A DNA stretch of 62,974 nt, the filler included, from Octopus bimaculoides (lineage: Eukaryota): the NCBI RefSeq assembly GCF_001194135.2. It is 6 parts of 5 records of this genome, joined end to end, with 100 filler letters (N's around TTAATTAATTAA, not from the genome) between each part and the next. Parts side by side here need not be neighbours in the genome. Positions count along the whole stretch, not along the records: positions 34,203 to 51,441 come from NC_069010.1; 5 more parts are not named here. The stretch is one strand, 5' to 3'. The notes beneath the pieces were generated by a model, which saw nothing but the letters and a program-made list of their open reading frames with translations, was not told the DNA's origin and did not search any database. Positions within the stretch are counted from its first letter, which is position 1, and each line of letters opens with the position of its first letter. Position numbers and translations under genes: made by a program. Of the stretch, positions 34,103 to 51,441 are shown piece after piece.

Positions 34103-35256
34103 NNNNNNNNNNNNNNNNNNNNNNNNNNNNNNNNNNNNNNNNNNNNTTAATTAATTAANNNNNNNNNNNNNNNNNNNNNNNNNNNNNNNNNNNNNNNNNN
34201 NNATATATATATATATACATACAAATATAAGTTTATATATATGTGTATATGAATAAAATAAATCTCTGAGTGAGCTATAAACAGTAGCTGCACGACATTG
34301 TGAAGTATATTTGCCACTTAAGGGTGGATGCTACTGTAGCTTGTAGCCAAGGAAAACACCTCCTCCAACTGGCTATTGACACACTTTCTGTGCCCTTACA
34401 GTATTTTCAAAGCGAAGTCATCCTTCCCATCTTCAACCTGACGTGATACACACGGACTCGGGTTTCTGAGTATTGACCCGTCATCAGTGTGTGACAATCA
34501 CCGCTTGTCAATGTGAAGTGCTTCCCAATGCAAATATATATATATCCTTTTTCCAGTGATGAAAAGTCACTGATCTCGGAAAGTGTAAACAAGCAATAAT
34601 AAATCTCTGCTGTTTTCTTGTTGTTGTTCATGTAGTTGCTGTAGTTGTTGTTCTTCTTCCGTTTCCCTCTACTTTTCCCTTTATTTTTTCATCTCCTATT
34701 TCGATTTCTTTTTCTTCTTTTCTTCTTCCTCTCTTTCTTCCTTTTCTTCATCCTCCTTTTATATTAATTTCTCTTCTCTTTTCTATTTCTACTTCTTCCT
34801 AAACTTATTTTCTTTTTCTTCGAATTCTTCTTTTTTCTTATTCTTCATTACTTCTTCATTTTCTTAAATTCTTCTTCTTCTTCATTATTTCTTCATTTTC
34901 TTAAATTCTTCTTCGTTTTCTTCCTCTCCTTGATCCTTTCCTTCTTCTTCATCTTCAACTTCTTTTACTTCTGTTTCTTCTTCTTTTGTTTCGCTATCTT
35001 CTACTCCTTCCTAAACTTATTTTCTTCTTCCCTGAGCACTTTTCTTCTTTTTCTGATTCTTCTCTTTCTTCTTTTTATCTTCTTCTCCTTCTTCTTCTTC
35101 TCCTTTTCCTTTTTCTTCGTTTTCTTCTTTTTCTTGGTTATGTTTTTGTTTATCATGATATCTCTTCTCATCGTTTGTCTCATTTCAAACACAAATTCTT
35201 CAATTTTTATCACAAATATTTTCCGTGAGAAATGTTATCATTCTATACTGTTACAC

Positions 35257-35327
35257 ATGTTTACAGATATAACATTTCGTGTATTGGACAAGGATGCTCC
35301 AAATGGTCTTTCTTGGTTATACATATT
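35257..35327 (+). pseudogene. LRR pseudoexon (71 nt)
   Basis: Follows the same TATCACAAATATTT...CTG intron block as the intact cassettes. Reads YNISCIGQG...NGLSWLYI(L) with indels; both splice sites lost. Confidence 0.5.
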
Positions 35328-36215
35328 TTATGTTTTTTCAGCTTTGTAGTTTCAATATTATGAATATAATTGTTCACCAATGTTTTAATGTCCACTCGTT
35401 TTATCGCCCCTCGCTCTTTTTATCAGTTTATCTCACATTCCTTTCCCCTATTGGCTCAATATCTGTTTGATTGTTTCTAAAGACGAGTACAACTGGGATG
35501 TTAAATATGTCTGCTCTAAATCTTATAAGTGGAAATTTACGCTCATGTATATTTTCGAATCTGCATGTATATGTGACTATAAAATTTGTATTCATAAATG
35601 ATGCCTTTTTCTTTTCTCTGGATTATACTTTTCCGTCTTCTCTTCCTCCGTCTTCTATTCATCTCTAACTTCTTCATTCACTTCAGGTACTTCTGCTAAT
35701 GCAGCAGCTTATAGATGCAGAAGTGTAAAATACAAATATTTAGAATATAGTCACAAATATACTTCTCTTTATAAAAGGTTCCAACTTCCGGCACTCGTAG
35801 TTTAGATCAATTTTCAAGATACGCTTTCACTGAAAATATAGAAATTTGATATCTTCTCATGCACCTTCTTCTTGCAACTTCTTCCTTTTAAATTTATATT
35901 CGCTCTCATCAAAGTTGTGGTTGAGTGTTTTTCAATGTATCAAAGATAGTATGTGGGCGTAACTGCACAGTGCTATTGTATGCACAGTGCAAAATTCTAT
36001 GTGCATGTGTGCGTATCTGACAGCGTGTATCTGTTTTTCTTTTCCAACTTGTTCTCTTTCTCCAAAATACCTTCTCATACTCCGAATTATTAGTTAAATT
36101 TTCTTTAAGTAATTTCTGTTTTCATCTTATTTCTGTTGTTTGTTTTAAATACGTTCTTCTTCTTCTTCTTCTTCTTCTTCTTCTTCTTCTTCTTCTTCTT
36201 CTTCTTCTTCTTCTT

Positions 36216-36272
<57 letters not shown>

Positions 36273-37228
36273 TTACATTTTCTACTTCGGTATCCCATTC
36301 TTTGTAATTCTCATCGTATTCTTCTTTCTCCTTTTCTCCGTCGTCGCCATTCTCCGTTTCCCCAAATGGATTCTTAGGACTCAATATTAACAATCTATGA
36401 TATTTTTTCTCCTGCATCATTATAGTATCAGCAATAGCATCCAAGGATAATTCTAATTACTTACTGTCTTCCCATTTGGCTTTTCTTCCAACTTTATTCT
36501 TCTCTAAGTCATATTGTCTCTTTCTCCATTTCTGTTTGAACATATTTTAGAGTCTTTGAACGTACGTGTGAAGGTATGTGCGTAAAGTCATGTGTAGGTG
36601 TATCAACATCAGCGATAAATATTCTCCGCAAAATTGTATGTGTGTATGTGCATATCACTGTACTATTTATATTCATATTTAATTTTCTTCTCCCCTATTC
36701 TGATTTTCGTTGTTATTGTCCACATCCTCCTTGTACTGTGTTTTTCATTCCTGAATCTTTCGCCTTTTTTACAATTTCCTCTACATCGTTCATTTTCATC
36801 ATCTTGTGTTTCTTCTCCGCTTTTCAAAATTTTCAACTGCTTTTTCTATTTTTTTTGAATGCGTTCTTTTCGCTTCATCACATTTTATTTGCACTTTTAT
36901 AAACCCATACACTCCATAACTTGTTTTCCTTCACCACCTTAGTAATTCCGCTAAAATTCTCCGTGTGCATCGCTTCTGTATTCCATCTTCTGCTCCCACC
37001 TCTTGTCCTCGCCTCCTCCTCTCCTCTTCATACTTCCGCTCTTCCTGTCCTCGCAGCTCCTACATCCCCTCCTCCTCAATCACCTACTCCAAATCGTCCT
37101 CTTCATTAATTTTATCATGCTTTTCTTTCATAGCCCTCGTTCTCTCATCTGATTTTAAAACTCCAAATTTAATGTTTTATCAGACAACACTTCTATATTA
37201 TTTCTTTATAATCTGTTTCATGTAACAG

Positions 37229-37300
37229 AACATTCGAGCATAATAAGATCGAGAAAGTCGAACGTGGAACCTTCCAAGATCTTATCAATTTACAGAAACT
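37229..37300 (+). CDS. 72-nt phase-2 exon encoding one typical extracellular LRR
   Basis: taacag|A ACA TTC GAG CAT AAT AAG ATC...TTA CAG AAA CT|gtaagt = TFEHNKIEKVERGTFQDLINLQK(L); canonical AG/GT, no stop. Confidence 0.85.
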
Positions 37301-37697
37301 GTAAGTTCAATTTCCGTTGATATTTTATTAACGTAATATTACTAGAAATTTCATGTCTTCGCTTTCTTAATCTTTCTTTCTGCACTTCTAAATATATTCT
37401 GCAATTATATCTCCGTTTGTGGGGGTATGAAGACTTGCAGGAATGTGTGAATGAATAAATGTTTTGTGCATGAAAGGATGATTTTCTGCGAACTCGTATA
37501 TCTGTATCTGTGTGTGGTAGGTTAACTTCATACCTCTGTCGGTGTCTGAGTGTCTGCAACAGAAATCATAGTTACTAACAGAAAATCATGTTACTAAAAA
37601 CATTTTTACACGGTTTTCATATCATTCTTTTACCCAAATGAAATACATTTCTCACATGCATACACGCGCGCGCGCGCGAAGATATGCATATATGCAG

Positions 37698-37969
37698 ACA
37701 CGGGTGTTAGTGTAGTAAGAAGTTTGTTACAAACCACATGGTTCAAGACTGAGTGTCACAATGTGGAACCGCTGGCGCATGACGTTTCCTTTTTTCTCGG
37801 GTTAAGCAATTCCTTTTGAGTGGGTTTGATAGATAAAACTGAAAAAAGTCTGCTGTTTGATACATGTTATATACATATATGTGTGTCTTTTGTGTCTTTT
37901 TTGTCCCCAACCACCTCTTAACTAATGGTGCAGTGCTTCCCACGCCGTCACTTAACGCTTCGGCAAAAG
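37698..37969 (+). mobile_element. Diverged SINE A, cut at the Gypsy LTR junction
   Basis: Head through CTTAACGCTTCGGCAAAAG, then abrupt start of LTR sequence. Confidence 0.65.
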
Positions 37970-37971
37970 TT

Positions 37972-39057
37972 TTGAACCCGTACTCTGGTCAGTTGGGGAG
38001 AATGGTATTTCCTTTGTCTTGTCGGTAACCACAGCTATTTTTAGCGTAGCTGCCCCTTTCCGGTCAGCGAAAGTTCAAAAAGGCAGCATAGGAATTTTAC
38101 CGACCGACCCATCTTGGCAGGGGGTAAAGTAGCACTATGAGCTATGGTATTTGGGCTGAATAGGAGAACGGGAATTGGCGGGAAAGCAGTCGGCCGAAGG
38201 AGTTAGCAGAGAACTTTAGCCAGTGGAGTTGTAGCAGCCAGCCAGGGCAGTGGAGTTGTAGCAGCCAGCCGGGGCAGTTGAGTTGTAGCAGCCAGCCGAG
38301 GCAGTCGAGTTGTAGCAGCCAGCCGAAGCAGTTGGGGGATAGCAGTTTGCCCGTGGAGATGGGGCCAGTCGAGTGAGATGAAGTGAAGATGAGAAAGAGA
38401 TAGCCGGTCGTCCGAAGCAATTGTACAGAGATGAAGATGAAGAATAAGTCTGACAGAGAGAAAGATATGGTCAGCAGAAATGTATAGAGTCCCAGAGAGA
38501 GAGAGAGGGACAGAGAGATGGGATACTGGCAGCCAAATGCGATGGCAGTAGTCAGTTGTTTACCTCTTGGATTATAGTGAGTTTTGTNNNNNNNNNNNNN
38601 NNNNNNNNNNNNNNNNNNNNNNNNNNNNNNNNNNNNNNNNNNNNNNNNNNNGATGTGTAACTGAAAAGAGAAAACGAAGAAAAGAAAGAACAGAAAGAAC
38701 TTTCGATGGATTTAATGATTGCGAACCCTTGATTATGTTCACGCAATTTTAGACCATTATATGCTATTGAACTGTTATGTAATGTTTTGGAATGTATTCT
38801 CATGTTTATGTAATGCTTTATTCTCATGTTTTTGATGTTATGTGAAAAGAAAAGGTTACCCAACGCATGGTCTTCGTGTTGTTTCTTCCTCCCCTCCTTT
38901 TTCCTGTGTTGTTCTTCGTTGCGTGCTCCAGCCGGGGCTTTATTATCGGTCAGGTGACCGAGACGAATTTGCTAACTCGCTGAGTGTGAACGTTCGCGCG
39001 CGCGCGAGTCCTTTCTTCGGTGTTAAGGATGTGCTTCGCGTGCGGGCGTTCGTAACA
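37972..39057 (+). mobile_element. 5' LTR of Ty3/Gypsy element, first 58 bp missing
   Basis: 37972-38021 is identical to 41409-41458 of the 3' LTR; ends ...GTAACA just before the PBS. Confidence 0.85.
38220..38333 (+). repeat. 27-bp tandem repeat (4 full copies plus partial) inside the LTR
   Basis: GCAGTGGAGTTGTAGCAGCCAGCCAGG-type units at 38220, 38247, 38274, 38301 and 38328. Confidence 0.9.
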
Positions 39058-39061
39058 AAAT

Positions 39062-39079
39062 TGGTGTCAGAAGTGGGAT
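39062..39079 (+). promoter_or_regulatory. Primer-binding site, tRNA-Leu(CAA)-type
   Basis: TGGTGTCAGAAGTGGGAT, complementary to the ...AUCCCACUUCUGACACCA 3' end of metazoan tRNA-Leu(CAA); 4 nt after the LTR end. Confidence 0.85.
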
Positions 39080-39113
39080 CTTTTGATTTGGTGCAGTGAG
39101 TTTGTTGTTCGTC

Positions 39114-39975
39114 ATGGCTTCGGAGGGTGCGAGTGCGAAGAGTCAGGCTGGGAGGGAGGAAGTATCCCTGTCCTTGATTGTGAGGATGCTGGAAGAGCAG
39201 AGGGAGAGCTTCGCTGAATTCAGGGAAGAGCAACCGCAGATGCGGGAGAGCTTCGCTCAATTCAGGAGGGAACAACAGAGGATGCGGGAGGAGTTCCGCG
39301 GACTGAGTAGTGATGTCGTATGTTGTAAGAAGCAGATCGAAAGGCCCAATGAGAGGACGGAGCGCATTGAGAAGTTTTGTGCTGCCGAGCCTGAGGTCGC
39401 TAAACCTGAAGTGGTTGCTGTTGCTGCATCATCACGTGATACTCCGACGTCTGGATGCGGGTCTCCTGGAGTTGAAAGTAGCGGTGTGGTCCCTGCTAGG
39501 AAGAAGCCACAAGAGGCGTTGGCTAGGGCTCTGGAGTTCGAGTCCTGTATGAAACCGAGCATCNNNNNNNNNNGGCGTTGGCTAGGGCTCTGGAGTTCGA
39601 GTCCTGTATGAAACCGAGCATCGGAAATTTACGAGTAAGTGGATGCTCCGGATTCAAGGCGCGGAGCGTAAAAGTCCGTGAAGTTGAAGGACTTAGTAGG
39701 CGGAATGAGGAGACGAGTGGTGTGTGTTGTTGGCACTGTGGGAAAGGCGGACACAGGCGGCGAGACTGCTACAGTTGGCGGCGAGAGAGGTTTCGAACTG
39801 CAGACCTCAAGTTGAACCCGAGGAAGTGCAGTCTTTCAGAAGGAAGTAAAGTACCTGGGACACCTGAGTTGTGACTGCCCAACAAGAAATAGAGTCGGGA
39901 AACGAAGAGGAGCTGGTGTTGAGGGGCAACCACCAGCCAGACGTTCCAAAGAAGCCCCACACTCGAGACGGCATG
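39114..39975 (+). pseudogene. gag: Gypsy gag, internally deleted and rearranged
   Basis: MASEG... coiled-coil N-terminus, RKKPQE|ALARALEFES junction, zinc knuckle CWHCGKGGHRRRDC (39728-39769), intruding RT-like snippet, GNEEELVLRGNHQP end. Confidence 0.75.
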
Positions 39976-39983
39976 CAGGGTCT

Positions 39984-40230
39984 GTGATTGACAGCCTTAG
40001 AGTGAACGGAAAAGTCAACGGCCGGACGTGTTCTCTAATGATCGATTCGTCCTCGGGACAGACTTTTGTGAGGTCCGATGTGTTGCAGGATCTAGAGTTG
40101 TCAGAGACATCGCAGCAGTTGTGTGGTGTGACCGGACATTGCACTGAGCTGAGAGGGCCAGTTCATGTCCGGATTGATGTTGCCGGATTGGACGTTGTGC
40201 TTCCTGTTTACGTAGTTGAAATGGAGGATT
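39984..40230 (+). pseudogene. Gypsy aspartic protease domain, runs into gap
   Basis: SLRVNGKVNGRTCSLMIDSSSGQTFVR; the D(S/T)G triad reads DSS at 40044. Confidence 0.75.
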
Positions 40231-40882
40231 NNNNNNNNNNNNNNNNNNNNNNNNNNNNNNNNNNNNNNNNNNNNNNNNNNNNNNNNNNNNNNNNNNNNNN
40301 NNNNNNNNNNNNNNNNNNNNNNNNNNNNNNNNNNNNNNNNNNNNNNNNNNNNNNNNNNNNNNNNNNNNNNNNNNNNNNNNNNNNNNNNNNNNNNNNNNNN
40401 NNNNNNNNNNNNNNNNNNNNNNNNNNNNNNNNNNNNNNNNNNNNNNNNNNNNNNNNNNNNNNNNNNNNNNNNNNNNNNNNNNNNNNNNNNNNNNNNNNNN
40501 NNNNNNNNNNNNNNNNNNNNNNNNNNNNNNNNNNNNNNNNNNNNNNNNNNNNNNNNNNNNNNNNNNNNNNNNNNNNNNNNNNNNNNNNNNNNNNNNNNNN
40601 NNNNNNNNNNNNNNNNNNNNNNNNNNNNNNNNNNNNNNNNNNNNNNNNNNNNNNNNNNNNNNNNNNNNNNNNNNNNNNNNNNNNNNNNNNNNNNNNNNNN
40701 NNNNNNNNNNNNNNNNNNNNNNNNNNNNNNNNNNNNNNNNNNNNNNNNNNNNNNNNNNNNNNNNNNNNNNNNNNNNNNNNNNNNNNNNNNNNNNNNNNNN
40801 NNNNNNNNNNNNNNNNNNNNNNNNNNNNNNNNNNNNNNNNNNNNNNNNNNNNNNNNNNNNNNNNNNNNNNNNNNNNNNNNNN

Positions 40883-41266
40883 GAACTGCCCCGGGAAACC
40901 TCCAGCTATGTGAAGTATCTCCAGGAAAGTCTGACTGAGGTACACCAGCAAGTTAGAGAAGCTCTGAAGTTTTCAGGTGAAGTAAGGAAGCGTCGGCACG
41001 ACACCAGGGCTAGTGAAGCCAACTTTAAGGAGGGTGATGAAGTGTGGTCTCATAACCCCAGGCGGAAGAGAGGACAGTCACCGAAGTTGCAGAGTCCATG
41101 GGAAGGGCCTTATACAGTAATGGATCGCCTGTCCGATGTGACATACTGGATTCGAGGAGGCAGGAGAACTTCTCCGAAAATTGTACACGCAAACCGTCTG
41201 TGGAAGTACCATGGTTCTGGACAGTTCAGCTGGAACACACCTGCAGGGGTTGGATCCACTTGCTAA
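40883..41266 (+). pseudogene. Gypsy integrase C-terminal (GPY/F) region
   Basis: FKEGDEVWSHNPRRKRGQSPKLQSPWEGPYTVMDRLSDVTYWI...VHANRLWKY. Confidence 0.9.
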
Positions 41267-41339
41267 AAAAGTCTGAGAAAGAAAAGAATCGATTTAGGAG
41301 TTGAAATGTTGTTTGTTTTTGTCGGGACGACAAAGAACT

Positions 41340-41458
41340 AGGGAAGGGGTTGTGATGCGACCACCGAAAATGCAATTAGCACTATATCCCTATCTCCCGG
41401 GCTGGGTCTTGAACCCGTACTCTGGTCAGTTGGGGAGAATGGTATTTCCTTTGTCTTG
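41340..41458 (+). mobile_element. Polypurine tract and start of 3' LTR
   Basis: AGGGAAGGGG (41340-49), then TGTGATGCG at 41351; the remainder lies in the gap. Confidence 0.85.
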
Positions 41459-42727
41459 NNNNNNNNNNNNNNNNNNNNNNNNNNNNNNNNNNNNNNNNNN
41501 NNNNNNNNNNNNNNNNNNNNNNNNNNNNNNNNNNNNNNNNNNNNNNNNNNNNNNNNNNCTTCTTCTTCTTCTTCTTCTTCTTCTTCTTCTTCTTCCTATT
41601 CTTCTTCTACTTCTGTTTTTTTCTTCTTCTACTCCTACTTCTTCTTATGCTAATTACTTTTCTTCTTCACGTCCACATTCTCGTCATCGTCCTGCTCCTG
41701 CTCCCCTTCTCCTCCTCATTCTTCTTCATCTACTCTTTCTTTTCTTCTTCTTCTTCTTCTTCTTCTTCTTCTTCTTCTTCTTCTTCTTCTTCTTCTATTC
41801 CTATTCTTCTTCTTTTTCTTCTGCTTCCTCTTCCTCTTCTTCTTTTTCTTCTTCTTTTTCTTCTTTTTCTTCCGTTTCTTCTTCTTCTTCTTCTTCTTCT
41901 TCTTCTTCTTCTCCTTCCTCTGCTTCTTCTTCTTCTTCTTCTTCTTCTTCTTCTTCTTCTTCTTCTTCTACTTCTTCTTTTTCTACTTTTTCTTTTTGTT
42001 CTAATTCTTTTTTTGTTCTAATTCTTCCTTTTCTTCTTCTTCTTCTTCTGCTTCTTCTTCATCTTCTTCTTCTCATTCTCCTTCCTCTTATTCTTCATCT
42101 TCTCTTTCTTCTTCTATTTTTTCTTCTTCTTCTTCTTCTTCTTCTTTTCCTATTCTTCTTCTTCTTCTTCTTCATCTGCCTCTTCTTTTTTCTTCTTCTT
42201 TTTCTAGTTTTTCTTTTTGTTCTAATTCTTCTTCTTCTTCTTCTTCTTCCTCTTCCACTTCTTCTTCTCCTTCTTCTTCTTCTACTCCTCCTCCTTCTTC
42301 TTCTTCTACTCCTCCTCCTCCNNNNNNNNNNNNNNNNNNNNNNNNNNNNNNNNNNNNNNNNNNNNNNNNNNNNNNNNNNNNNNNNNNNNNNNNNNNNNNN
42401 NNNNNNNNNNNNNNNNNNNNNNNNNNNNNNNNNNNNNNNNNNNNNNNNNNNNNNNNNNNNNNNNNNNNNNNNNNNNNNNNNNNNNNNNNNNNNNNNNNNN
42501 NNNNNNNNNNNNNNNNNNNNNNNNNNNNNNNNNNNNNNNNNNNNNNNNNNNNNNNNNNNNNNNNNNNNNNNNNNNNNNNNNNNNNNNNNNNNNNNNNNNN
42601 NNNNNNNNNNNNNNNNNNNNNNNNNNNNNNNNNNNNNNNNNNNNNNTTCTTCTTCTTCTTCTTCTTCTCCTTCTTCTTCTACTTCTTCTTTTTCTTCTTC
42701 TTCTTCTCCTTCTTCTGCTTCTTCTTC

Positions 42728-42759
<32 letters not shown>

Positions 42760-42970
42760 CTCCTTCTTCTGCTTCTTTTTTTCTACTCCTATTTCTTCTT
42801 TTTCTTCTTCCTTCTTCTTCTTCTTCTTCTTCTTCTTCTTCTGAATCATTGTTATCTGTCCTTTTTTAATTGTCATCTGTACTTTTTTTAATTGTTATCC
42901 GTCCGATGTTTCATATTGTATCAGAAATATTTGCCATATAATATATTTTACGCTTTCTTTACTGCTATAG

Positions 42971-43042
42971 ATATCTTCACTCCACCAACATTGCAATTAT
43001 CAAACCAGGTGCATTCACGGGGCTTTCGAATTTACAGACACT
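42971..43042 (+). CDS. 72-nt phase-2 LRR exon
   Basis: ctatag|A TAT CTT CAC TCC ACC AAC ATT...TTA CAG ACA CT|gtaagt = YLHSTNIAIIKPGAFTGLSNLQT(L). Confidence 0.85.
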
Positions 43043-43163
43043 GTAAGTCCGTTCAGTTTCTTGATATTACTTTCTGACAATGAATTATTTCTTGTCATTT
43101 TTTAAATTCTTTTTTGTCTTTCATTTTCTCAATAAACTCGATGTTCAATATTTCCTCTTCTTC

Positions 43164-43195
<32 letters not shown>

Positions 43196-44102
43196 CTTCT
43201 TCTTCTTCTTCGCCTCCTTTTCTTTTTCTTCTCCTTCTTCTTTCTTTCATCATGTTCTTCTTCTCCTTCTTCCTCATCTTCTACTTCTTCTCCTATGTCT
43301 TCTTCTCCTATGTCTTCTTCTCCTATGTCTTCTTCCTTTCTTCTTCTTCTTCTTCTTCTTCTTCTTCTTCTTCTTCTTCTTCGATATCTATCCTCTTTTT
43401 CTTCCTGTTAATCTTAAACCACAGTGTTTTATATTGTATCACAAATATTTCCCAAATGATATATGGAATATATGGCCTGAAACAATTTAACTGATGATAT
43501 ATTTCTTGTAAAAAGGTGTATTCTAATTCAACTTTCTTTTGTCAATTAAGCGATATTAAATTAATAATCTCTCTCACCATATTGCCCCACGAGTGTGTGT
43601 GAATATGTGTGAATGTGAGTGTGCGTATCACCTTCCGTCGTTGATATTATGAGTATAAGTGTGCGTATGAGTGCATGTGTATATATTGATCAATGAATCC
43701 ATATATTCTCTGATTTTTCAGCCATGTTATCCCTCTCAATCTTTTCTGCTCTATCTCTGAATTATTTCCTGTTATGTCTTTAACGAAATATTCTGTTTTC
43801 AACGTCTTGAACACCTCGATTTTCAATGTGTCGTCGTCGTCGTCGTCTTCTTCTTCTTCTTCTTCTTCTTCTTCTTCTTCTTCTTCTTCTTTTTCTTCTT
43901 CTTCTTCTTCTTCTTCTTCTTCTTCTTCTTCTTCTTCTTCTTCTTCTTCTTCTTCTTCTCCTCCTTCTCCTTCTTCTTTTTCTCCTTCTTCTTCATTGTT
44001 GTCTGTGCCTTTTTCATTTTGTCATTCTAAAGCCACATTGTTTGATATTGTATCACACATATTTTGCATATAATCTATTTTACTCTTTCTTTACTGCTAT
44101 AG

Positions 44103-44174
44103 AAATCTTGGCTTCAACAACATTGCAACTTTCAAACCAGATACATTCACTGGGCTTTCGAATTTACAGACATT
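44103..44174 (+). CDS. 72-nt phase-2 LRR exon
   Basis: ctatag|A AAT CTT GGC TTC AAC AAC ATT...TTA CAG ACA TT|gtaagt = NLGFNNIATFKPDTFTGLSNLQT(L). Confidence 0.9.
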
Positions 44175-44425
44175 GTAAGTCCGTTCAGATTCTTGATATT
44201 ACTTTCTCACAATGAATTATTTCTTGTCATTTTTTGAATACTTTTTTCTCCTTTCATTTTCTCGATCAACCAGATGTTCAATGTGTCTTTTCTTCTTTTT
44301 CTTCTTCTTCTTCTTCTCCTCCTCCTCATTCTTCTTCTTCTTCTTCTTCTCCTCCTCATTCTTCTTCTTCTTCTTCTTCTTCTCCTTCTTCTTCTCCTTC
44401 TTCTTCTCCCATCCTTCTTCTTCTT

Positions 44426-44456
<31 letters not shown>

Positions 44457-44605
44457 TTATTATTATCTTTATTATTATTTTTTTCTTCTTCTACTCCAAT
44501 GTTATCTGGCGTTTTTTCATCCTGTCATTCTAAGGCCACAATGGTTTATATTGTATCACAAATATTTGCCATATAATATATTTTACGCTTTCTTCACTGC
44601 TATAG

Positions 44606-44677
44606 AGATCTTCACTCCAACAACATTGCAACTATCAAACCAAATACATTCAAGGGTCTTTCGAATTTACAGGAACT
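44606..44677 (+). CDS. 72-nt phase-2 LRR exon
   Basis: ctatag|A GAT CTT CAC TCC AAC AAC ATT...TTA CAG GAA CT|gtaaat = DLHSNNIATIKPNTFKGLSNLQE(L). Confidence 0.9.
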
Positions 44678-44786
44678 GTAAATCCGTTCAGTTTCTTGAT
44701 ATTACTTTCTGACAATGAATAATTTCTCGTCAGTTTTTTGAATACTTTTTCTCTTTCATTTTTACATCAACTCGAAGTTGAATATG

Positions 44787-44817
<31 letters not shown>

Positions 44818-44937
44818 CTTCTTCTTCTTCGTTATCTGTCCTCTTTTTTCTTCCTTTCATTCTAAATTCACAATGTTTGATATTGTATCACAAATATTTT
44901 CCATATAATCTATTTTACTCTATCTTTACTGGTATAG

Positions 44938-45009
44938 ATATCTTTACTCCAACAACATTGCAACTATCAAACCAGCTGTATTCACGGGGCTTTCAGATTT
45001 ACAGACATT
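44938..45009 (+). pseudogene. 72-nt LRR exon with intact frame but destroyed donor
   Basis: gtatag|A TAT CTT TAC TCC AAC AAC ATT...CAG ACA TT|tgaagtcc = YLYSNNIATIKPAVFTGLSDLQT; sister copies have gtaagtcc here. Confidence 0.8.
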
Positions 45010-45436
45010 TGAAGTCCGTTCAGTTTCTTGATATTACTCGCTGACAATAAATTTTTTCTTGTCATTTTTTGGATACTTTTTTGTCTTTTCATTTTCTCGA
45101 TCAACTCGATATATAAGACTTTTTCTTGTTGTTGTTGTTGTTGTTGTTCTTCTTGTTCTCCTTATCCTCTTGCTTCCTCTTCTTCTTCAACTTCTACTTC
45201 TTTTTTTCGTCTTCTTCCTTTTCTTCTTCTTCTTCTTCTTCTTCTTCTTCTTCTTCTTCTTCTTCTTCTTCTTCTTCTTCTTCCTTTTCGTCTCCATTTT
45301 CGACATATATCCCATGTTCTCTCATGTCGTCTATACATGGTCTGCCATATTTGCCGATATTATAAATAGAATTCTGTCTATTATTTTATCATAAATATTT
45401 TCTATTTCATTTCTTTAACTGTATTTACTTCTACAG

Positions 45437-45509
45437 AGCGCTTGACGGTGCTAATATGACAAGGACAACGACTGCGACATAACATTTCCTGCATGAAACC
45501 TTTATGTCT
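45437..45509 (+). pseudogene. LRR-like pseudoexon (73 nt, in-frame stop)
   Basis: ctacag|A GCG CTT GAC GGT GCT AAT ATG...ACA TAA...CT|gtaagc; good splice sites, one base too long. Confidence 0.5.
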
Positions 45510-46430
45510 GTAAGCGTATATGTTTATGTCCTTTTGCATATGAATGACTGGATGTATATGTGACAATATAATTCACATACTTATGTTTTAGCTACACTTT
45601 TGTTTCCCATTCCCTTCTCGATTCTTGTGGTTGTTATCCGTCTATTCTTCCACCGAATTCGTTTCTTCCTAATTTACGTCACTTTATTTATCTAATAGAT
45701 CAAGCTTCGAAGGACAAGTGAAAATAGAAATGTGTAAAATATTGTCAAATATGACTTTCCATACATAAAGCTCACCAGGTTCTCCGCTTCAATCTTTGTC
45801 TTCTTATGTTCTTCGCTATCTCCTCATTTTTGCTGTCCACTAGCTTTTTCCGACATTCTCTTCAGAATTCTTTGTTGATTTTGTTGTTGTTGTTGTTGTT
45901 GTTCTTCTTCTTCTTATCATTATTATTATTATTATTGTTATTATTATTCATCTTTTCCACCTCCTCGAACACTCCTCCTACTCCAGTCCTTCCCTTGTTC
46001 TTCCGCTTCCACTTCTTCCTCTTTCTCTTCTTCTTCAAATGAAAAATATAAATTCTTTTATTCTTTTATTGACACAACTTACTTTAAGTAAATCTCACCA
46101 GTTTACCCTTCCTTCTTCTGTGTTATTTCATTTTCTTCGTTTCTGCTTTCTTTCTGCTGAACACATGCTCTTTCCAATCTTCTCCTCTTCTGAATTGTTT
46201 CTCGTTGCTGTTGTTATTGTAGTTGTTGCTATTGTTGTGGTTGTTGTTGTTCTCCTTCTTCTATTTCTTTCTCTTCTCCTTCTTTCTCTTCTTCTTCTTC
46301 CATTTCTTCCTTCTTCTTCTTCTTTTTCCTCTACTTCCTCTTCTTCGTTTTCTTCTTCTTCGTTATCTATCCTCTTTTTCTTCCTGACATTAATATCATA
46401 TTTAAAACCTTCTCTAGTAACGGTAATATA

Positions 46431-46615
46431 GAAACTGAGAGGAACATAATGAAGAGCATCCAGCAAGTATCCAACTCCATCCACCAAAGTATGAAGGTGA
46501 CTATAGATTATCCCACTAAGCACCCCAACAATAGTCTCCCGGTCCCTGTTACTGATATTCACTTAGAGACTGTGAACAACAATGTTCAGCTCTTCCACTC
46601 CTGTTACATGATTTA
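46431..46615 (+). mobile_element. Penelope-like RT fragment
   Basis: MKSIQQVSNSIHQSMKVTIDYPTKHPNNSLPVPVTDI...QLFHSCYM resembles the PLE RT segment IANSIHPSIQVxxDYPSxxxxxxLPxLD...FYxKP (from recall). Confidence 0.6.
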
Positions 46616-46644
46616 ATTAGTAATTTAGATGTAAGCTACATTTG

Positions 46645-46995
46645 GAGCTGTGGAGGCGCAATGGCCCAGTGTTTAGGGCAGTGCACTCGCGATCATAGGG
46701 TCGCAGTTTCGATTCCCAAACCGGGCATTGTGAGTGTTTATTAAGCGAAAACACCTAAAGCTCCACGAGGCTCCGGCAGGGTATGGCGGCGAACCCTGCT
46801 GTACTCTTCCACCACAACTTTCTCTCACTCTTACTTCCTGTTTCTGTTGTGCCTGTAATTCAAAGGGTCAGCCTTGTCACACTATGTCACGCTGAATATC
46901 CCCTAGAACCACTTGCGCGTTAATTTCACAAGCAGGCTGTTCAGTTGATCGGATCAACTGGAACCCTCAACATCGTAACTGATGGAGTGCCAACA
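46645..46995 (+). mobile_element. tRNA-derived SINE, family C
   Basis: Head GGAGGCGCAATGGCCCAGTGTTTAGGGC (A box) and GTTTCGATTCCC (B box), followed by ~270 bp of non-tRNA body. Confidence 0.8.
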
Positions 46996-47889
46996 CACAT
47001 ACATTTGGAGCTAAAATAATTGGAAATTGGTTCTTTAAAACAGTTATGTCAAAGTATGTGNNNNNNNNNNNNNNNNNNNNNNNNNNNNNNNNNNNNNNNN
47101 NNNNNNNNNNNNNNNNNNNNNNNNNNNNNNNNNNNNNNNNNNNNNNNNNNNNNNNNNNNNNNNNNNNNNNNNNNNNNNNNNNNNNNNNNNNNNNNNNNNN
47201 NNNNNNNNNNNNNNNNNNNNNNNNNNNNNNNNNNNNNNNNNNNNNNNNNNNNNNNNNNNNNNNNNNNNNNNNNNNNNNNNNNNNNNNNNNNNNNNNNNNN
47301 NNNNNNNNNNNNNNNNNNNNNNNNNNNNNNNNNNNNNNNNNNNNNNNNNNNNNNNNNNNNNNNNNNNNNNNNNNNNNNNNNNNNNNNNNNNNNNNNNNNN
47401 NNNNNNNNNNNNNNNNNNNNNNNNNNNNNNNNNNNNNNNNNNNNNNNNNNNNNNNNNNNNNNNNNNNNNNNNNNNNNNNNNNNNNNNNNNNNNNNNNNNN
47501 NNNNNNNNNNNNNNNNNNNNNNNNNNNNNNNNNNNNNNNNNNNNNNNNNNNNNNNNNNNNNNNNNNNNNNNNNNNNNNNNNNNNNNNNNNNNNNNNNNNN
47601 NNNNNNNNNNNNNNNNNNNNNNNNNNNNNNNNNNNNNNNNNNNNNNNNNNNNNNNNNNNNNNNNNNNNNNNNNNNNNNNNNNNNNNNNNNNNNNNNNNNN
47701 NNNNNNNNNNNNNNNNNNNNNNNNNNNNNNNNNNNNNNNNNNNNNNNNNNNNNNNNNNNNNNNNNNNNNNNNNNNNNNNNNNNNTATATATATATATAAA
47801 TTTAAAGAATGGAGTAAACGCATATTATAACTGCATACTTTTATTCCGACATATGTTTCGAAGAATTACAATTTATGCGATCCATAGGA

Positions 47890-48286
47890 ATCGGTGATGT
47901 TAAAAATGTAAACTTTCCCTCAGGGAAATGTATGGGAACCTGCTTAAACGTAAGACATTATAACCGAGTATGAGAACTATAGTTGGATAAGGTTATAACG
48001 TAATTCATTTGAAAAAACCGTTGGAGATTCCTTGTTAAATGTTGTTGGTAATAAATAGCAATGAGTTGATTGAAATTTCAGTGGATCAACATGATTTCCG
48101 AGCATTGTGTTTTATCATCGAAAAGTTTATGTTCAAATATCAGACGATTGGTTTGATCTAGTTTCCGCCATGTTTATAAATACACATAATTAACAGGAGT
48201 CGAGAGAATGGCCTACATACCAACCTACATGCACACATATATATAAAGATTCCTGTGTGTGTATGCGTATGTGCTTACATAAACAT

Positions 48287-48318
<32 letters not shown>

Positions 48319-48774
48319 TGTTATTACTTATTATATCCTTATGACAACGGAGTTATCAGAAGGAATAATATCCACAACAATTCCATTCAGATATTTCTGA
48401 TGATTGCTGCATTTGCCTCTGTATTTCTATCACGAAACTATTTGGTAATTTGGTTATCTAGGGACTATAATATTCTTTCTACGATAAGCACAAGGCCTGC
48501 AATTTTGTGGCTGGGGGCTTGTCGATTACATCCACCTTATTGCTCGGCTGGTACTTAATTCATCGACCCCGAAATGATGAAAGGCAAAGTCGTCCTCGAA
48601 ATTTGGAACTCATAACATGAAAACAGAACACCCTGTAACTATAGAGTCGATTGATACACAGTATTACTATATCGCAAGGTTTTGTGATTTGCCAATCTGA
48701 CAGAAACGGGTTGATTCAATATGTATGATATCCCCATTCTTCTGTGTTAATATATATATGTTTACATATACACG

Positions 48775-48836
<62 letters not shown>

Positions 48837-49130
48837 TATATACATTTGTGTGTGTGGAGATGTAAAGAAAGAACGAGAGGNNNNNNNNNNCACACACACA
48901 CACACATGTATATATACATTTGTGTGTGTGGAGATGTAAAGAAAGAACGAGAGGGAAATTTAACACAATCCTATCCCTATTAAAGCTTAACCACACTGCT
49001 TGGAATGGGGAACATTTTAAGGGAGATAAATAGTAGTAAAACTAACAACGTTTGCGCAGTATTAGAGGTTGGGAGGTATACAAGCAGATCTATTTAAAAA
49101 TTGTATTTATCATAACATGATAGAATTCCA
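47890..49130 (+). pseudogene. Decayed LRR-coding stretches interrupted by repeats
   Basis: RNSFEK; LNVVGNK*Q*VD*NFSGST; QISDDWFDLVS; LEWGTF*G; IQADLFKN; YHNMIEF. Confidence 0.4.
48470..48620 (-). mobile_element. SINE family B
   Basis: GGTACTTAATTCATCGACCCCGAAATGATGAAAGGCAAAGTCG is the reverse complement of the core. Confidence 0.75.
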
Positions 49131-50205
49131 TTACGATGTTGCAAAATTCCTAAAAGGTTCAGAATATTCTCTTCTGAAAATCATTTTCTATAAAGGACGT
49201 GTCAAGGAATAAAATATTTCCAATACCTACAATTTCAGATATATCTACTATAATTTCCAGTCATATTTAGAATGCTTATCCAGCTAAATCTTTCATGTCA
49301 AATATAAGTGGTATTTTGCTCAGCAATATTTCGCAGCTTCGCAATACCTAGCGACTTTCGCCACAACAGTTATGTGACAATACCGTTTGCCAGTTATTGC
49401 TAGTATGTCACTTATATCTTGGAGCTGGTAATCTATGTATTGCAGGTTAGCTACATATAGTAGATTTATCCATATCTTGTATGTCATCTCTTCAAACATA
49501 TCATCTATATCTATCATAGTATGTCATCTGTCCAGTGTATCATCTATATCTTGTATAACCTCTAAGTCTAGTACGCCATTTATATATTGTATATCATCTA
49601 TATATTGTATGCCATCTCTTTCTCCTCTGTCAGCTGTATGTAATCTGTTTGCCCAATACATTTTATCATATCATGTTTGTCTAATGATACAAATTTATAT
49701 CTAGAATATCATCTAAAGATTCTCGAACCACATCCTACCTAATTTTATTTGATATCTGTTATTTCTAATTGTCATTTTCTCATTTCTCCTCTCTAATAAA
49801 TCTACTGTAGTATCTAGTACAGAGTGGTGGGAATGGCTTACATTCATACCCACCTCTCTCTCTCTCTCTCTCTCTCTGTAACTCTAACTTTATTTCTTTC
49901 TACTACCATATTCATGCTTGAATTTGTATGAAGATGTCTATGATTGCATGTGAAGGTGCAATAAGACAAGGGTAAATCTTCCCTTATTCATCTTCCCTCT
50001 CATTTCTACTCAGGCATAAGACTATTGAACTGAGATGTTTTTGGCTTTAGCGATTACCTGATGACCTCCTTATCAGTGGATTATTTGGTCTTGGTCAATA
50101 CACAGCGAATGAGACAGACCCAAAGACATACAGAAATATTAAAATGTATTGAAATGAAAATGAAATAATTATCTTCTATCACATGACTTATAAACTCAAC
50201 GAAGG

Positions 50206-50269
<64 letters not shown>

Positions 50270-50460
50270 GGCACACCGGGCAAAATGCTTACCGATAATT
50301 CGTCTATCTTCACTTTATTATTTCAAATGCCACCGAGGTCGATTTTGTCTTTCGTCCTTTCAGCGTCGCTTAAATAAGTACCAGTTACGCACTGGGGTCG
50401 ATCAAATCGACTTAGTCCCTTCTCCCAAATTTGAGGTCTTGTGCTTCCATTAGAAATGAT
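50270..50460 (+). mobile_element. SINE family B between (ATT)n tracts
   Basis: CACCGGGCAAAATGCTTA...CCGAGGTCGATTTTGTCTTTCGTCCTTTC...AAGTACCAGTT. Confidence 0.8.
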
Positions 50461-50495
50461 TATTATTATCATTATTATTATTATTATCATTATTA

Positions 50496-50554
<59 letters not shown>

Positions 50555-51090
50555 GAGTGAGAGAGCTGTGCATGCCATCAGAGTGACATTGGGGTAAAAT
50601 ATACGAAGCCCAGTATATACCCATAATGACTACCCGTCTGATAAGGGTGCACCAGGCACATGCATCGCAACCATGTGTGCGCGACATGGTGATCTCATAT
50701 CAAGATAAACAGCACATGACCTTGCAGGTGGGGCCCAGTTAGAATTTCTTTGAGGTCGAGTAGCCCATCCCGCTCAAAAGGTCCCTGAATAAGAGTTGTT
50801 TAAGGATGTTGAACGAAACACCCATGTTTCCAGAGGTGAAATATTCAAACCCCAAAGAATCTCTCTCAACACATAGCTATGGTGCTCCCCATAACTTCTG
50901 CTCATGATCAGAGATGCACATATCATCAGCCATCAAGGGAATGCTCAACTGGATATGGTCGAATAACTGACAAGCAAATCTGTGTTATTAAGCAGAATAT
51001 TTACTGTAGCTCATCTTTTATACCAAGACAAAACAATGTACATGATAACACTTCCAATCAATTAAGATCAGAAGCCTGGTACTGCATCAG
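50555..51090 (-). mobile_element. Element X, second and longer copy, between (TAA)n tracts
   Basis: Aligns with 1430-1886 and extends ~70 bp further. Confidence 0.7.
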
Positions 51091-51093
51091 TTA

Positions 51094-51146
<53 letters not shown>

Positions 51147-51441
51147 GTTCATTAATTTTATTTTTATAACGTGCTTTCACTTCACTACCGAGCGCAGCTC
51201 TGTGCGCCTTGGGTACGTGCTGTGGTTTGCTGTGTTGTTCTTATGGTTACTGTATTGAAAATCTTTTGCGTAGGATGTGTGCAGTGCCCAGTAGTGCAAT
51301 TTTCTGTATGTTATATATATTTGTAAGTCCTTGTGTTTTTGTTATGTATTTGTCTGAATATTTTTTTATTATACCTAAGGCACCTACTATGATAGGAATT
51401 GTTTCTGTGTTTAGATTCCACATTCGAGTTACCTCTATTTC
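51147..51441 (-). mobile_element. Dong/R4-clade LINE 3' end: restriction-like endonuclease C-terminus, UTR, (TAA)n
   Basis: Minus 51441-51247: EIEVTRMWNLNTETIPIIVGALGIIKK...IQKIALLGTAHILRKRFSIQ*, open up to the gap; 100-bp UTR, then (TAA)n. Confidence 0.85.

Follow-up and report, generated by a model that had tools for sequence, protein, structure and literature searches.

What does a tandem array of closely similar leucine-rich-repeat (LRR) exons do in an octopus genome? The array considered here lies in a 62,974-nucleotide (nt) stretch of Octopus bimaculoides DNA (assembly GCF_001194135.2; hereafter the window, whose positions are used throughout), within the piece at 34203-51441, which comes from NC_069010.1 and is AT-rich draft scaffold with eight internal N gaps. 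A preliminary description, made from the sequence alone, had read four of these exons as young cassettes of a diversifying recognition module. Our analysis indicates that the piece probably holds the central part of the LRR-cassette array in a gene from an octopod-specific family of the adhesion G-protein-coupled receptor (GPCR) type, in which the binding face is diversified and the cassettes could be skipped in frame. The earlier interpretation is partly supported: it is of the right kind where the gene family is concerned and for the window it is unproven, and the observation behind it is real but overstated for this locus.

LRR cassettes and their gene family

Four 72-nt exons on the plus strand carry the repeat (a slash marks the exon end). 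Cassette A (42971-43042; acceptor TATAG, donor CT/GTAAGT) encodes YLHSTNIAIIKPGAFTGLSNLQT, cassette B (44103-44174; donor TT/GTAAGT) encodes NLGFNNIATFKPDTFTGLSNLQT and cassette C (44606-44677; donor CT/GTAAAT) encodes DLHSNNIATIKPNTFKGLSNLQE; cassette D (44938-45009) holds the open frame YLYSNNIATIKPAVFTGLSDLQT and is followed by TT/TGAAGT, with TG for GT. Each is preceded by ...ACTGCTATAG and is in phase 2 (1 nt, 23 codons, 2 nt), the split codon always being Leu, and each exon amounts to one 24-residue LRR. Introns included, units A to D are 82-89% identical across 240-290 nt (blastn, E ~1e-70), far above chance, which bears out the earlier claim of four cassettes with common intron flanks; the translations likewise reproduced the residues it had listed (YLHS, NLGF, DLHS and YLYS in the strand, T or E before the junction Leu, and GA, DT, NT and AV). 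A fifth cassette, E1 (37229-37300, plus strand), is an intact 72-nt phase-2 LRR exon bounded by AG...GTAAGT and encoding TFEHNKIEKVERGTFQDLINLQK; its flanks are just ~50-60% identical to those of the other units, pointing to an old copy. The conceptual window peptide matched Pfam LRR_8 (E = 3e-45), and the translations of E1 and A to D fit the 24-residue extracellular LRR consensus LxxLxLxxNxIxxIxxxxFxGLxx, the exception being Thr for Asn9 in A.

The closest proteins to the cassettes of the piece were all from Octopus. At first the nearest matches were short O. sinensis models named 'LRRC4-like', in which an N-terminal signal peptide and LRRNT are followed by similar cassettes; their loci carry the same design as the window, TGCTATAG followed by 72 nt and GTAAGT, and each of the four models breaks off at the end of a contig or runs into the TAA of the GTAAGT donor. 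An exhaustive HMMER search together with a word-indexed search yielded longer relatives. In P0054, P0163, P0107, P0187 and P0188 the N-terminal exon is followed by cassettes of type I (NNISTIKEGAFTGLSNLKEL) and type II (NKISRIEKEMFQGLHNLEKL) in alternation, the latter being the type that E1 resembles, and then by a repeat that caps them, a CGCHLPA motif like that of an LRRCT, a Cys-rich domain and an HRM. HRM, GPS and 7tm_2 are present in P0233, P0218 and P0209, and in P0233 one and the same model runs from LRR and LRRCT through the Cys-rich domain and HRM to GPS (E = 1e-13) and 7tm_2 (E = 4e-30). The predicted family layout is that of an adhesion GPCR: signal peptide, LRRNT, a variable number of 24-residue LRRs, capping LRR, LRRCT, Cys-rich domain, HRM, GPS and seven-transmembrane (7TM) region. 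The Cys-rich domain after the LRRCT (NYSLFQRNLQCQTC...CCVGHLCN; residues 389-474 of P0054, with equivalents in P0163, P0107 and P0233) is conserved; it had no Pfam match at E <= 1 and is modelled by AlphaFold with pLDDT <50. Its ending, CCxGxLCN, looks by eye only like that of a Ly6/uPAR three-finger domain, which it may be.

Family models in O. vulgaris and O. sinensis bear the NCBI names 'adhesion G-protein coupled receptor G6-like', 'slit homolog-like' and 'LRRC4/15-like'. Judged by sequence, the family is the octopus-specific adhesion GPCR expansion described as 'group 3' by Ritschard et al. 2019 (PMC6408891), who found LRRs in 5 of 22 members, axial nerve cord, suckers and skin as sites of expression, and positive selection at the level of branches, with no specific selected sites reported. 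The likeness lies in the cassettes and introns of the window, which are homologous to LRR exons of these genes, and in the joining of LRR ectodomains to HRM, GPS and 7tm_2 across the family; the 72-nt arrays, the four hypervariable positions described below, isoforms differing in steps of 24 amino acids and units bounded by (CTT)n do not figure in that account.

Against O. sinensis, the window is 90% identical in intron positions -60 to -1, 81% in intron positions +1 to +35 and 74% in the exon, so that its type I cassettes are, by this comparison, homologous to the O. sinensis cassettes, introns included. The membership of the window's gene in the family rests on cassettes and introns because the terminal exons were not found in the piece; the GPCR part, too, was not found with this gene. 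The introns beside 42971, 44103, 44606 and 44938 (-60 to -1 and +1 to +35) are conserved more strongly than the coding exon itself, as is typical where alternative exons are regulated.

Binding face and predicted exon skipping

Numbering the repeat L1-x2-x3-L4-x5-L6-x7-x8-N9-x10-I11 and onwards, we examined where cassettes differ in the O. sinensis contig L005, which covers the whole ectodomain region with twelve cassettes (six of type I and six of type II). Pairwise divergence among the type I copies was 6.3% and 7.7% in the two intron flanks, 47% at codons 2, 3, 5, 7 and 8, and 9% at the other codons; among the type II copies it was 4.2% and 0.5% in the flanks, 36% at the same five codons and 4% elsewhere. 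Variable columns at these codons numbered 12/15 in type I and 9/15 in type II, against 36/209 and 13/210 in the respective flanks (Fisher p < 1e-6), and seven type I cassettes on four other contigs followed the same pattern. Among the distinct cassettes in proteins of O. sinensis and O. vulgaris (62 of type I and 23 of type II), entropy exceeded 2 bits only at positions 3, 5, 7 and 8, plus 18 in type I, and most other positions, exposed convex ones included, were nearly invariant. In the AlphaFold model of the relative P0163, whose LRR part has pLDDT >90, strands recur every 24 residues at positions 3-5 of each repeat and residues 3, 5, 7 and 8 are predicted to face the concave side; the preliminary description had proposed structure prediction to map the variable sites. 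The best Protein Data Bank matches of this model were Nogo receptor, LINGO-1, LGR4/5 and hagfish variable lymphocyte receptor (VLR).

The kind of change at these residues was as marked as its location. At the hypervariable codons (3, 5, 7 and 8) of L005 type II, divergence at codon positions 1, 2 and 3 was 0.60, 0.67 and 0.08, and the ratio of non-synonymous to synonymous differences per site (pN/pS) was 3.9, against 0.23 in the remaining codons. Because the changes fall on codon positions 1 and 2 and spare position 3, they point to selection for amino-acid change rather than hypermutation. The near-identical introns in turn imply very recent duplication or concerted evolution, and we infer that selection has meanwhile resisted homogenization of four residues. 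Concerted evolution, by germline gene conversion or unequal exchange, is a plausible source of the near-identical O. sinensis flanks, a role for gene conversion other than the one envisaged earlier. The 'diversifying recognition module' is thereby strongly supported for the family; for the window's own four cassettes the support is weak, as set out below. We found no literature description of this cassette hypervariability for octopus.

In the window, 11 of the 24 residue positions vary among A to D: the concave β-strand positions 3, 5, 7 and 8, and seven others (9, 13, 14, 17, 18, 20 and 24). With four of eleven variable positions on the concave face, the statement that the cassettes differ mainly there is too strong. 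'Young' is doubtful as well, for divergence is ~10% in the 60 nt of intron adjoining the exon at either end and 15% in the exon, and it rises to 28-30% in the distal flanks. Overall pN/pS among the window cassettes is ~1.3, and the five classical concave codons (2, 3, 5, 7 and 8) are 24% divergent compared with 13% for the rest of the exon; taken over all three codon positions, these codons were not enriched for variable columns relative to the whole flanks (6/15 versus 61/197, Fisher p = 0.57).

A sharper comparison used codons 3, 5, 7 and 8, defined independently in the relatives, and codon positions 1 and 2 only. Here 6/8 columns were variable versus 61/197 in the flanks (p = 0.016), with 8 substitution steps where 2.8 were expected (Poisson p = 0.009). 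None of the four third positions varied, and divergence at codon positions 1, 2 and 3 was 0.54, 0.375 and 0. This excess at the window's binding-face codons is suggestive; the flank yardstick takes in the constrained proximal intron, and measured against the distal flanks the excess is nearly gone. Because the proximal 60 nt are conserved and the distal flanks diverged, the window offers no clean neutral rate, and the whole flanks were dropped as a neutral yardstick once this emerged. The same gradient argues that the core of each unit is, or recently was, under constraint. The earlier caution that four copies leave room for drift holds: the signal in the window is weak, and drift at unconstrained sites is possible.

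The anatomy of the cassettes is compatible with skipping: whichever of the 72-nt phase-2 exons are joined, the frame is kept. For one O. sinensis gene NCBI predicts isoforms X2-X5, each with four of five cassettes; for the gene on L005 it predicts X1-X13, of 409, 385, 361 or 337 amino acids (steps of 24 residues), and for a third gene isoforms of 525, 501 and 477 residues. Exon skipping, as the preliminary description proposed, fits both the frame and these predicted isoforms and is supported for the family; at the window's locus it is plausible. The donors offer a further outcome. Left unspliced, a cassette ending in xT/GTAAGT reads Leu-TAA (window 43041-43048; L001 16811-16816; L002 15892-15897), and two O. 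sinensis models, P0004 and P0016, terminate exactly at such a Leu-TAA, so that intron retention or intronic polyadenylation would yield a truncated, LRR-only protein.

Decay, rival explanations and surroundings of the array

Several units of the array are broken, which the preliminary description overlooked together with cassette E1. The donor of D has TG instead of GT, so D would be unable to splice normally; read through, it continues ...LQTFEVRSVS and then meets a stop, and it is probably a dead cassette unless the assembly is in error. Between A and B, unit X (43385-43830, plus strand) keeps an upstream flank (43385-43464) and a downstream flank (~43712-43830), and ~250 nt of unrelated sequence stand in place of the acceptor, exon and intron start, which makes it a dead cassette. 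Unit T (45375-45509, plus strand) has an upstream flank (45375-45436) ~70% identical to the cassette flank and the acceptor CTACAG; its 73-nt body from 45437 reads (L)ALDGANMTRTTTAT and then an in-frame TAA at 45480-45482, and it is probably a diverged, dead cassette. As a terminal or capping exon of the family it was rejected, having no alignment with the L005 cap exon. At 35159-35386 (plus strand), blastn (60-62% identity to units A, C and D) and a flank-motif scan revealed a decayed remnant with a TATAA acceptor and a broken frame, in which the flank motif ATCACAAATATTTTCC and a ...DAPNGLSWLY trace are discernible. E1, A, B and C thus look usable and D, X, T and the 35.2-kb remnant do not.

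The window array therefore looks older, partly degenerate and less well kept than its O. sinensis relatives. These also contain defective cassettes, at 13724 in L003, 15914 in L004, and 11131 and 26247 in L005, as well as a cap exon at ~35734; the defects comprise an AG>AA acceptor accompanied by an in-frame stop, a deletion at the 3′ end, an insertion of 1 nt in a homopolymer, an unusual donor and the frameshift of the capping exon, and some of them may be long-read indel errors. Dead units do not imply a dead gene, because annotated O. sinensis genes with many isoforms hold dead cassettes too.

The alternative that survives best is that the locus is a decaying pseudogene fragment without a product, in which the differences among A to D are neutral drift at positions never constrained. 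The broken donor of D, the missing exon of X, the stop in T and the 35.2-kb remnant all fit this, as does a fragment of a long-terminal-repeat (LTR) retrotransposon in the intron between E1 and A. Further observations weigh against a functional array of the family in this piece. The pN at its hypervariable codons (0.39) is barely above neutral if the distal flanks are taken as neutral, pN/pS at its other 20 (scaffold) codons is ~0.8, and A and B carry N9T, T13I and I14F (Thr at the family-invariant Asn9 and Ile at the invariant Thr13 in A, Phe at the conserved Ile14 in B) at positions 98-100% invariant across 62 family cassettes. The site class of the preliminary description, as given above, showed no enrichment over the flanks. 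No predicted protein in a collection of 15 billion sequences contains the window's cassettes, the best being P0003 with 76% identity over 42% of the query, and the 17-kb piece shows no LRRNT, cap, LRRCT, Cys-rich, HRM or 7TM exon. The LRRNT/signal-peptide exon (MFHHVVSYRR...CKICTC...) had no tblastn match in 34203-51441, a piece that is gapped and begins 3 kb upstream of E1; in L005 the N-terminal exon lies 3.9 kb before the first cassette. Neither cap (YEDGAFLFLP) nor LRRCT (CGCHLPA) nor Cys-rich domain was found within 6 kb downstream of the last unit, a stretch that includes a 724-nt gap, and the HRM, GPS and 7tm_2 exons would be expected tens of kb past the piece. Two points concern the relatives: O. 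sinensis contigs break inside arrays, and some of the near-identity there is possibly an effect of assembly or polishing; and the isoforms are computed models, and among the 13 given for the L005 gene there are 5 with hybrid cassettes that lack colinearity with the contig. Because reads are aligned to near-identical exons and hybrid cassettes occur, part of the isoform diversity may be artefact.

Against the pseudogene explanation, A, B, C and E1 retain open frames and usable AG/GT sites, the exon and proximal 60 nt (10-15% divergent) exceed the distal flanks two- to threefold in conservation, the third positions of the hypervariable codons are invariant while 6/8 first and second positions vary, and the many-isoform O. 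sinensis genes hold dead cassettes as well. On balance we consider a mere pseudogene fragment possible though unlikely.

A local mutational process at the exon edges, hypermutation or patchy gene conversion, rather than selection on the protein, might instead have produced the variation: the variable codons lie at both ends of the exon, adjoining the splice sites, and in L005 type I synonymous divergence is raised in these codons too (pS 0.31 versus 0.16). The distribution over codon positions reported above, in L005 type II and in the window alike, speaks against it, as do the conservation of Leu4 and Leu6, which stand between variable codons, and that of the neighbouring splice-site nucleotides, and we regard such a process as very improbable.

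Two other routes to diversity fare worse. A VLR-like system, in which the cassettes would act as germline donors, their copies being inserted somatically into a receptor gene that is incomplete, has in its favour LRRs with a variable concave face and the hagfish VLR among the structural matches of a relative; the cassettes are, however, complete 24-residue exons with canonical acceptors and donors, constant phase and one orientation in ordinary multi-exon genes, the relatives are annotated as colinear spliced products and no incomplete germline gene was seen, and we give somatic assembly hardly any credence. Dscam-like mutually exclusive splicing, with exactly one cassette per transcript chosen through docking-selector RNA pairing, can point to tandem alternative exons with conserved upstream intron elements and an AT-rich imperfect palindrome in each upstream flank, yet the relatives' predicted isoforms hold four to eight cassettes at once in varying number, the palindromes, considered as looping or selector elements, fold no better than shuffled sequence (z = -0.2 to -1.6) and no docking-site candidate was found, so that it is scarcely to be entertained.

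We therefore return to an array within an octopod adhesion-GPCR-type gene. Its unit is one 72-nt phase-2 LRR exon that sits between two stretches of ~60 nt of conserved intron, with sense-strand (CTT)n as the outer boundary. Arrays grow and shrink through tandem duplication and decay of units, and this birth and death is shown by the occurrence of intact, broken and exon-less units in the window and its relatives. Selection for amino-acid change drives the solvent-facing LRR positions 3, 5, 7 and 8 apart in the family, as shown in O. sinensis and suggested in the window, and purifying selection, recent duplication or concerted evolution keeps the scaffold residues and introns alike. Being phase-symmetric, the cassettes could be spliced in any subset, giving from one gene ectodomains of differing length and binding surface, as the anatomy and the relatives' predicted isoforms suggest.

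The microsatellites that bound the units were located with Tandem Repeats Finder, all on the sense strand. (CTT)n/(TTC)n tracts at 41559-42842, with an assembly gap (42322-42646) inside, lie upstream of A, a (TTC)n tract at 43152-43382 between A and unit X, (TCT)n tracts at 43846-43994 and 44286-44455 upstream of B and C, a (CTT)14 tract at 44788-44830 upstream of D and a (TTC)n tract at 45147-45283 upstream of unit T. Such tracts bound every unit and in the window span 34706-36217 and 41559-46361. In all six loci examined (the window and L001-L005) they occur on the sense strand only and in cassette arrays only; in L005 all 74 arrays are on the sense strand (0 antisense) and lie at 10.5-33.1 kb, the stretch that the cassettes take up, the rest of the 52.7 kb having none. 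Gaps in the assembly and the ends of contigs fall at (CTT)n tracts. (CUU)n tracts and conserved proximal introns would suit regulated cassette exons, or the tracts may merely promote duplication and break assemblies. Downstream of the array, long (ATT)n/(TTA)n microsatellites (50206-50554 and 51091-51167) have a motif unlike the CTT within it.

The LTR-retrotransposon fragment in the E1-A intron occupies 38650-41270 (plus strand), with gaps at 39564-39573 and 40231-40882 dividing it. It contains an integrase C-terminal domain (PF22938, E = 1.6e-12) and a gag-like CCHC knuckle (CWHCGKGGHRRRDC) and weakly matches an aspartyl protease; the GC content of the fragment is 45-54% compared with ~33% in the surroundings. 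Directly upstream, at 38221-38345, a 27-nt tandem repeat (CAGTGGAGTTGTAGCAGCCAGCCGGGG, four copies) may belong to the terminal region of the retroelement. A 10-N gap within 48770-48954 is flanked by an (AC)n tract and an exact duplication of 74 nt, probably an artefact of scaffolding. On the minus strand at 48991-49035, KCSPFQAVW weakly matches the end of the family HRM (KCSPFTGIW; best E = 0.04), which could be chance or the relic of an oppositely oriented neighbouring family gene.

Known systems and the meaning of the family

One LRR per exon is also found in glycoprotein-hormone receptors and LGRs (LH receptor and LGRs as cited in PMC11378527) and in Slit, and LGR4/5 are among the best structural matches of P0163. 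Slit has its LRRs on separate 72-nt exons divided by phase-2 introns. The LH receptor, too, has 72-nt exons and phase-2 introns (as cited in PMC11378527). The repeats of these proteins differ from those of octopus in being old, divergent throughout and largely constitutive, with neither near-identical introns nor a hypervariable patch.

Closer in design are the LRR-ROCO genes of the brown algae Ectocarpus and Saccharina, with their shuffled 72-bp phase-2 LRR exons (PMC11378527; Zambounis 2012 as cited there). As in octopus, each such exon holds one LRR, exons are tandemly duplicated and shuffled, splice variants differ in LRR content, and four positively selected sites lie on the concave face (PMC11378527). 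The algal protein is, however, a cytosolic ROC-COR GTPase, where the octopus relatives have LRRCT, HRM, GPS and 7TM instead; it belongs to another kingdom, and microsatellite-bounded units are not reported for it. By this likeness the algal system is the closest analogue in design, not a homologue.

Lamprey and hagfish VLRs share with the octopus family the LRRNT-LRR-LRRCT fold and the diversity of the concave β-sheet (hagfish VLR matched with a TM score of 0.82, normalized to the target), but theirs arises somatically from partial cassettes without splice sites, whereas the octopus cassettes are complete germline exons with splice sites. VLR-like somatic assembly accordingly finds no support. 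With Dscam1 and the clustered protocadherins the common ground is tandem alternative exons for recognition surfaces in receptors expressed in the nervous system (for octopus, expression as given in PMC6408891). Those genes use Ig or cadherin domains and mutually exclusive splicing or promoter choice, whereas in octopus the number of cassettes varies by predicted skipping; mutually exclusive use of cassettes, which the preliminary description thought possible, is not supported.

Octopus genomes are noted for expanded neuronal recognition molecules, mainly protocadherins, and in addition for an adhesion GPCR expansion of unknown function. In the family described here the LRR ectodomains are built from cassette exons, and a divergence of 36-47% at the binding face against 0.5-8% in the introns points to strong selection for diverse recognition of ligands or partners; in-frame skipping of 72-nt exons offers a concrete route to isoform diversity. 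The fragmentation and misnaming of family genes in annotations is explained by breaks of contigs within arrays and by models that terminate at the TAA of the GTAAGT donor. The value of the window alone is modest, as that of an older, partly broken array.

A larger reading, which we offer tentatively and think rather improbable, is that concerted evolution, four residues held apart and combinatorial skipping together form an octopod germline-encoded diversity system in adhesion GPCR ectodomains, the skipping perhaps being regulated through the conserved proximal introns and the (CUU)n tracts. If this were true, dozens of recognition surfaces would come from each gene and serve the recognition of cells or ligands in suckers, skin and the arm nervous system. 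The system would then stand beside the diversity of Dscam1 or the clustered protocadherins as its LRR counterpart, and the window would be one older member of it.

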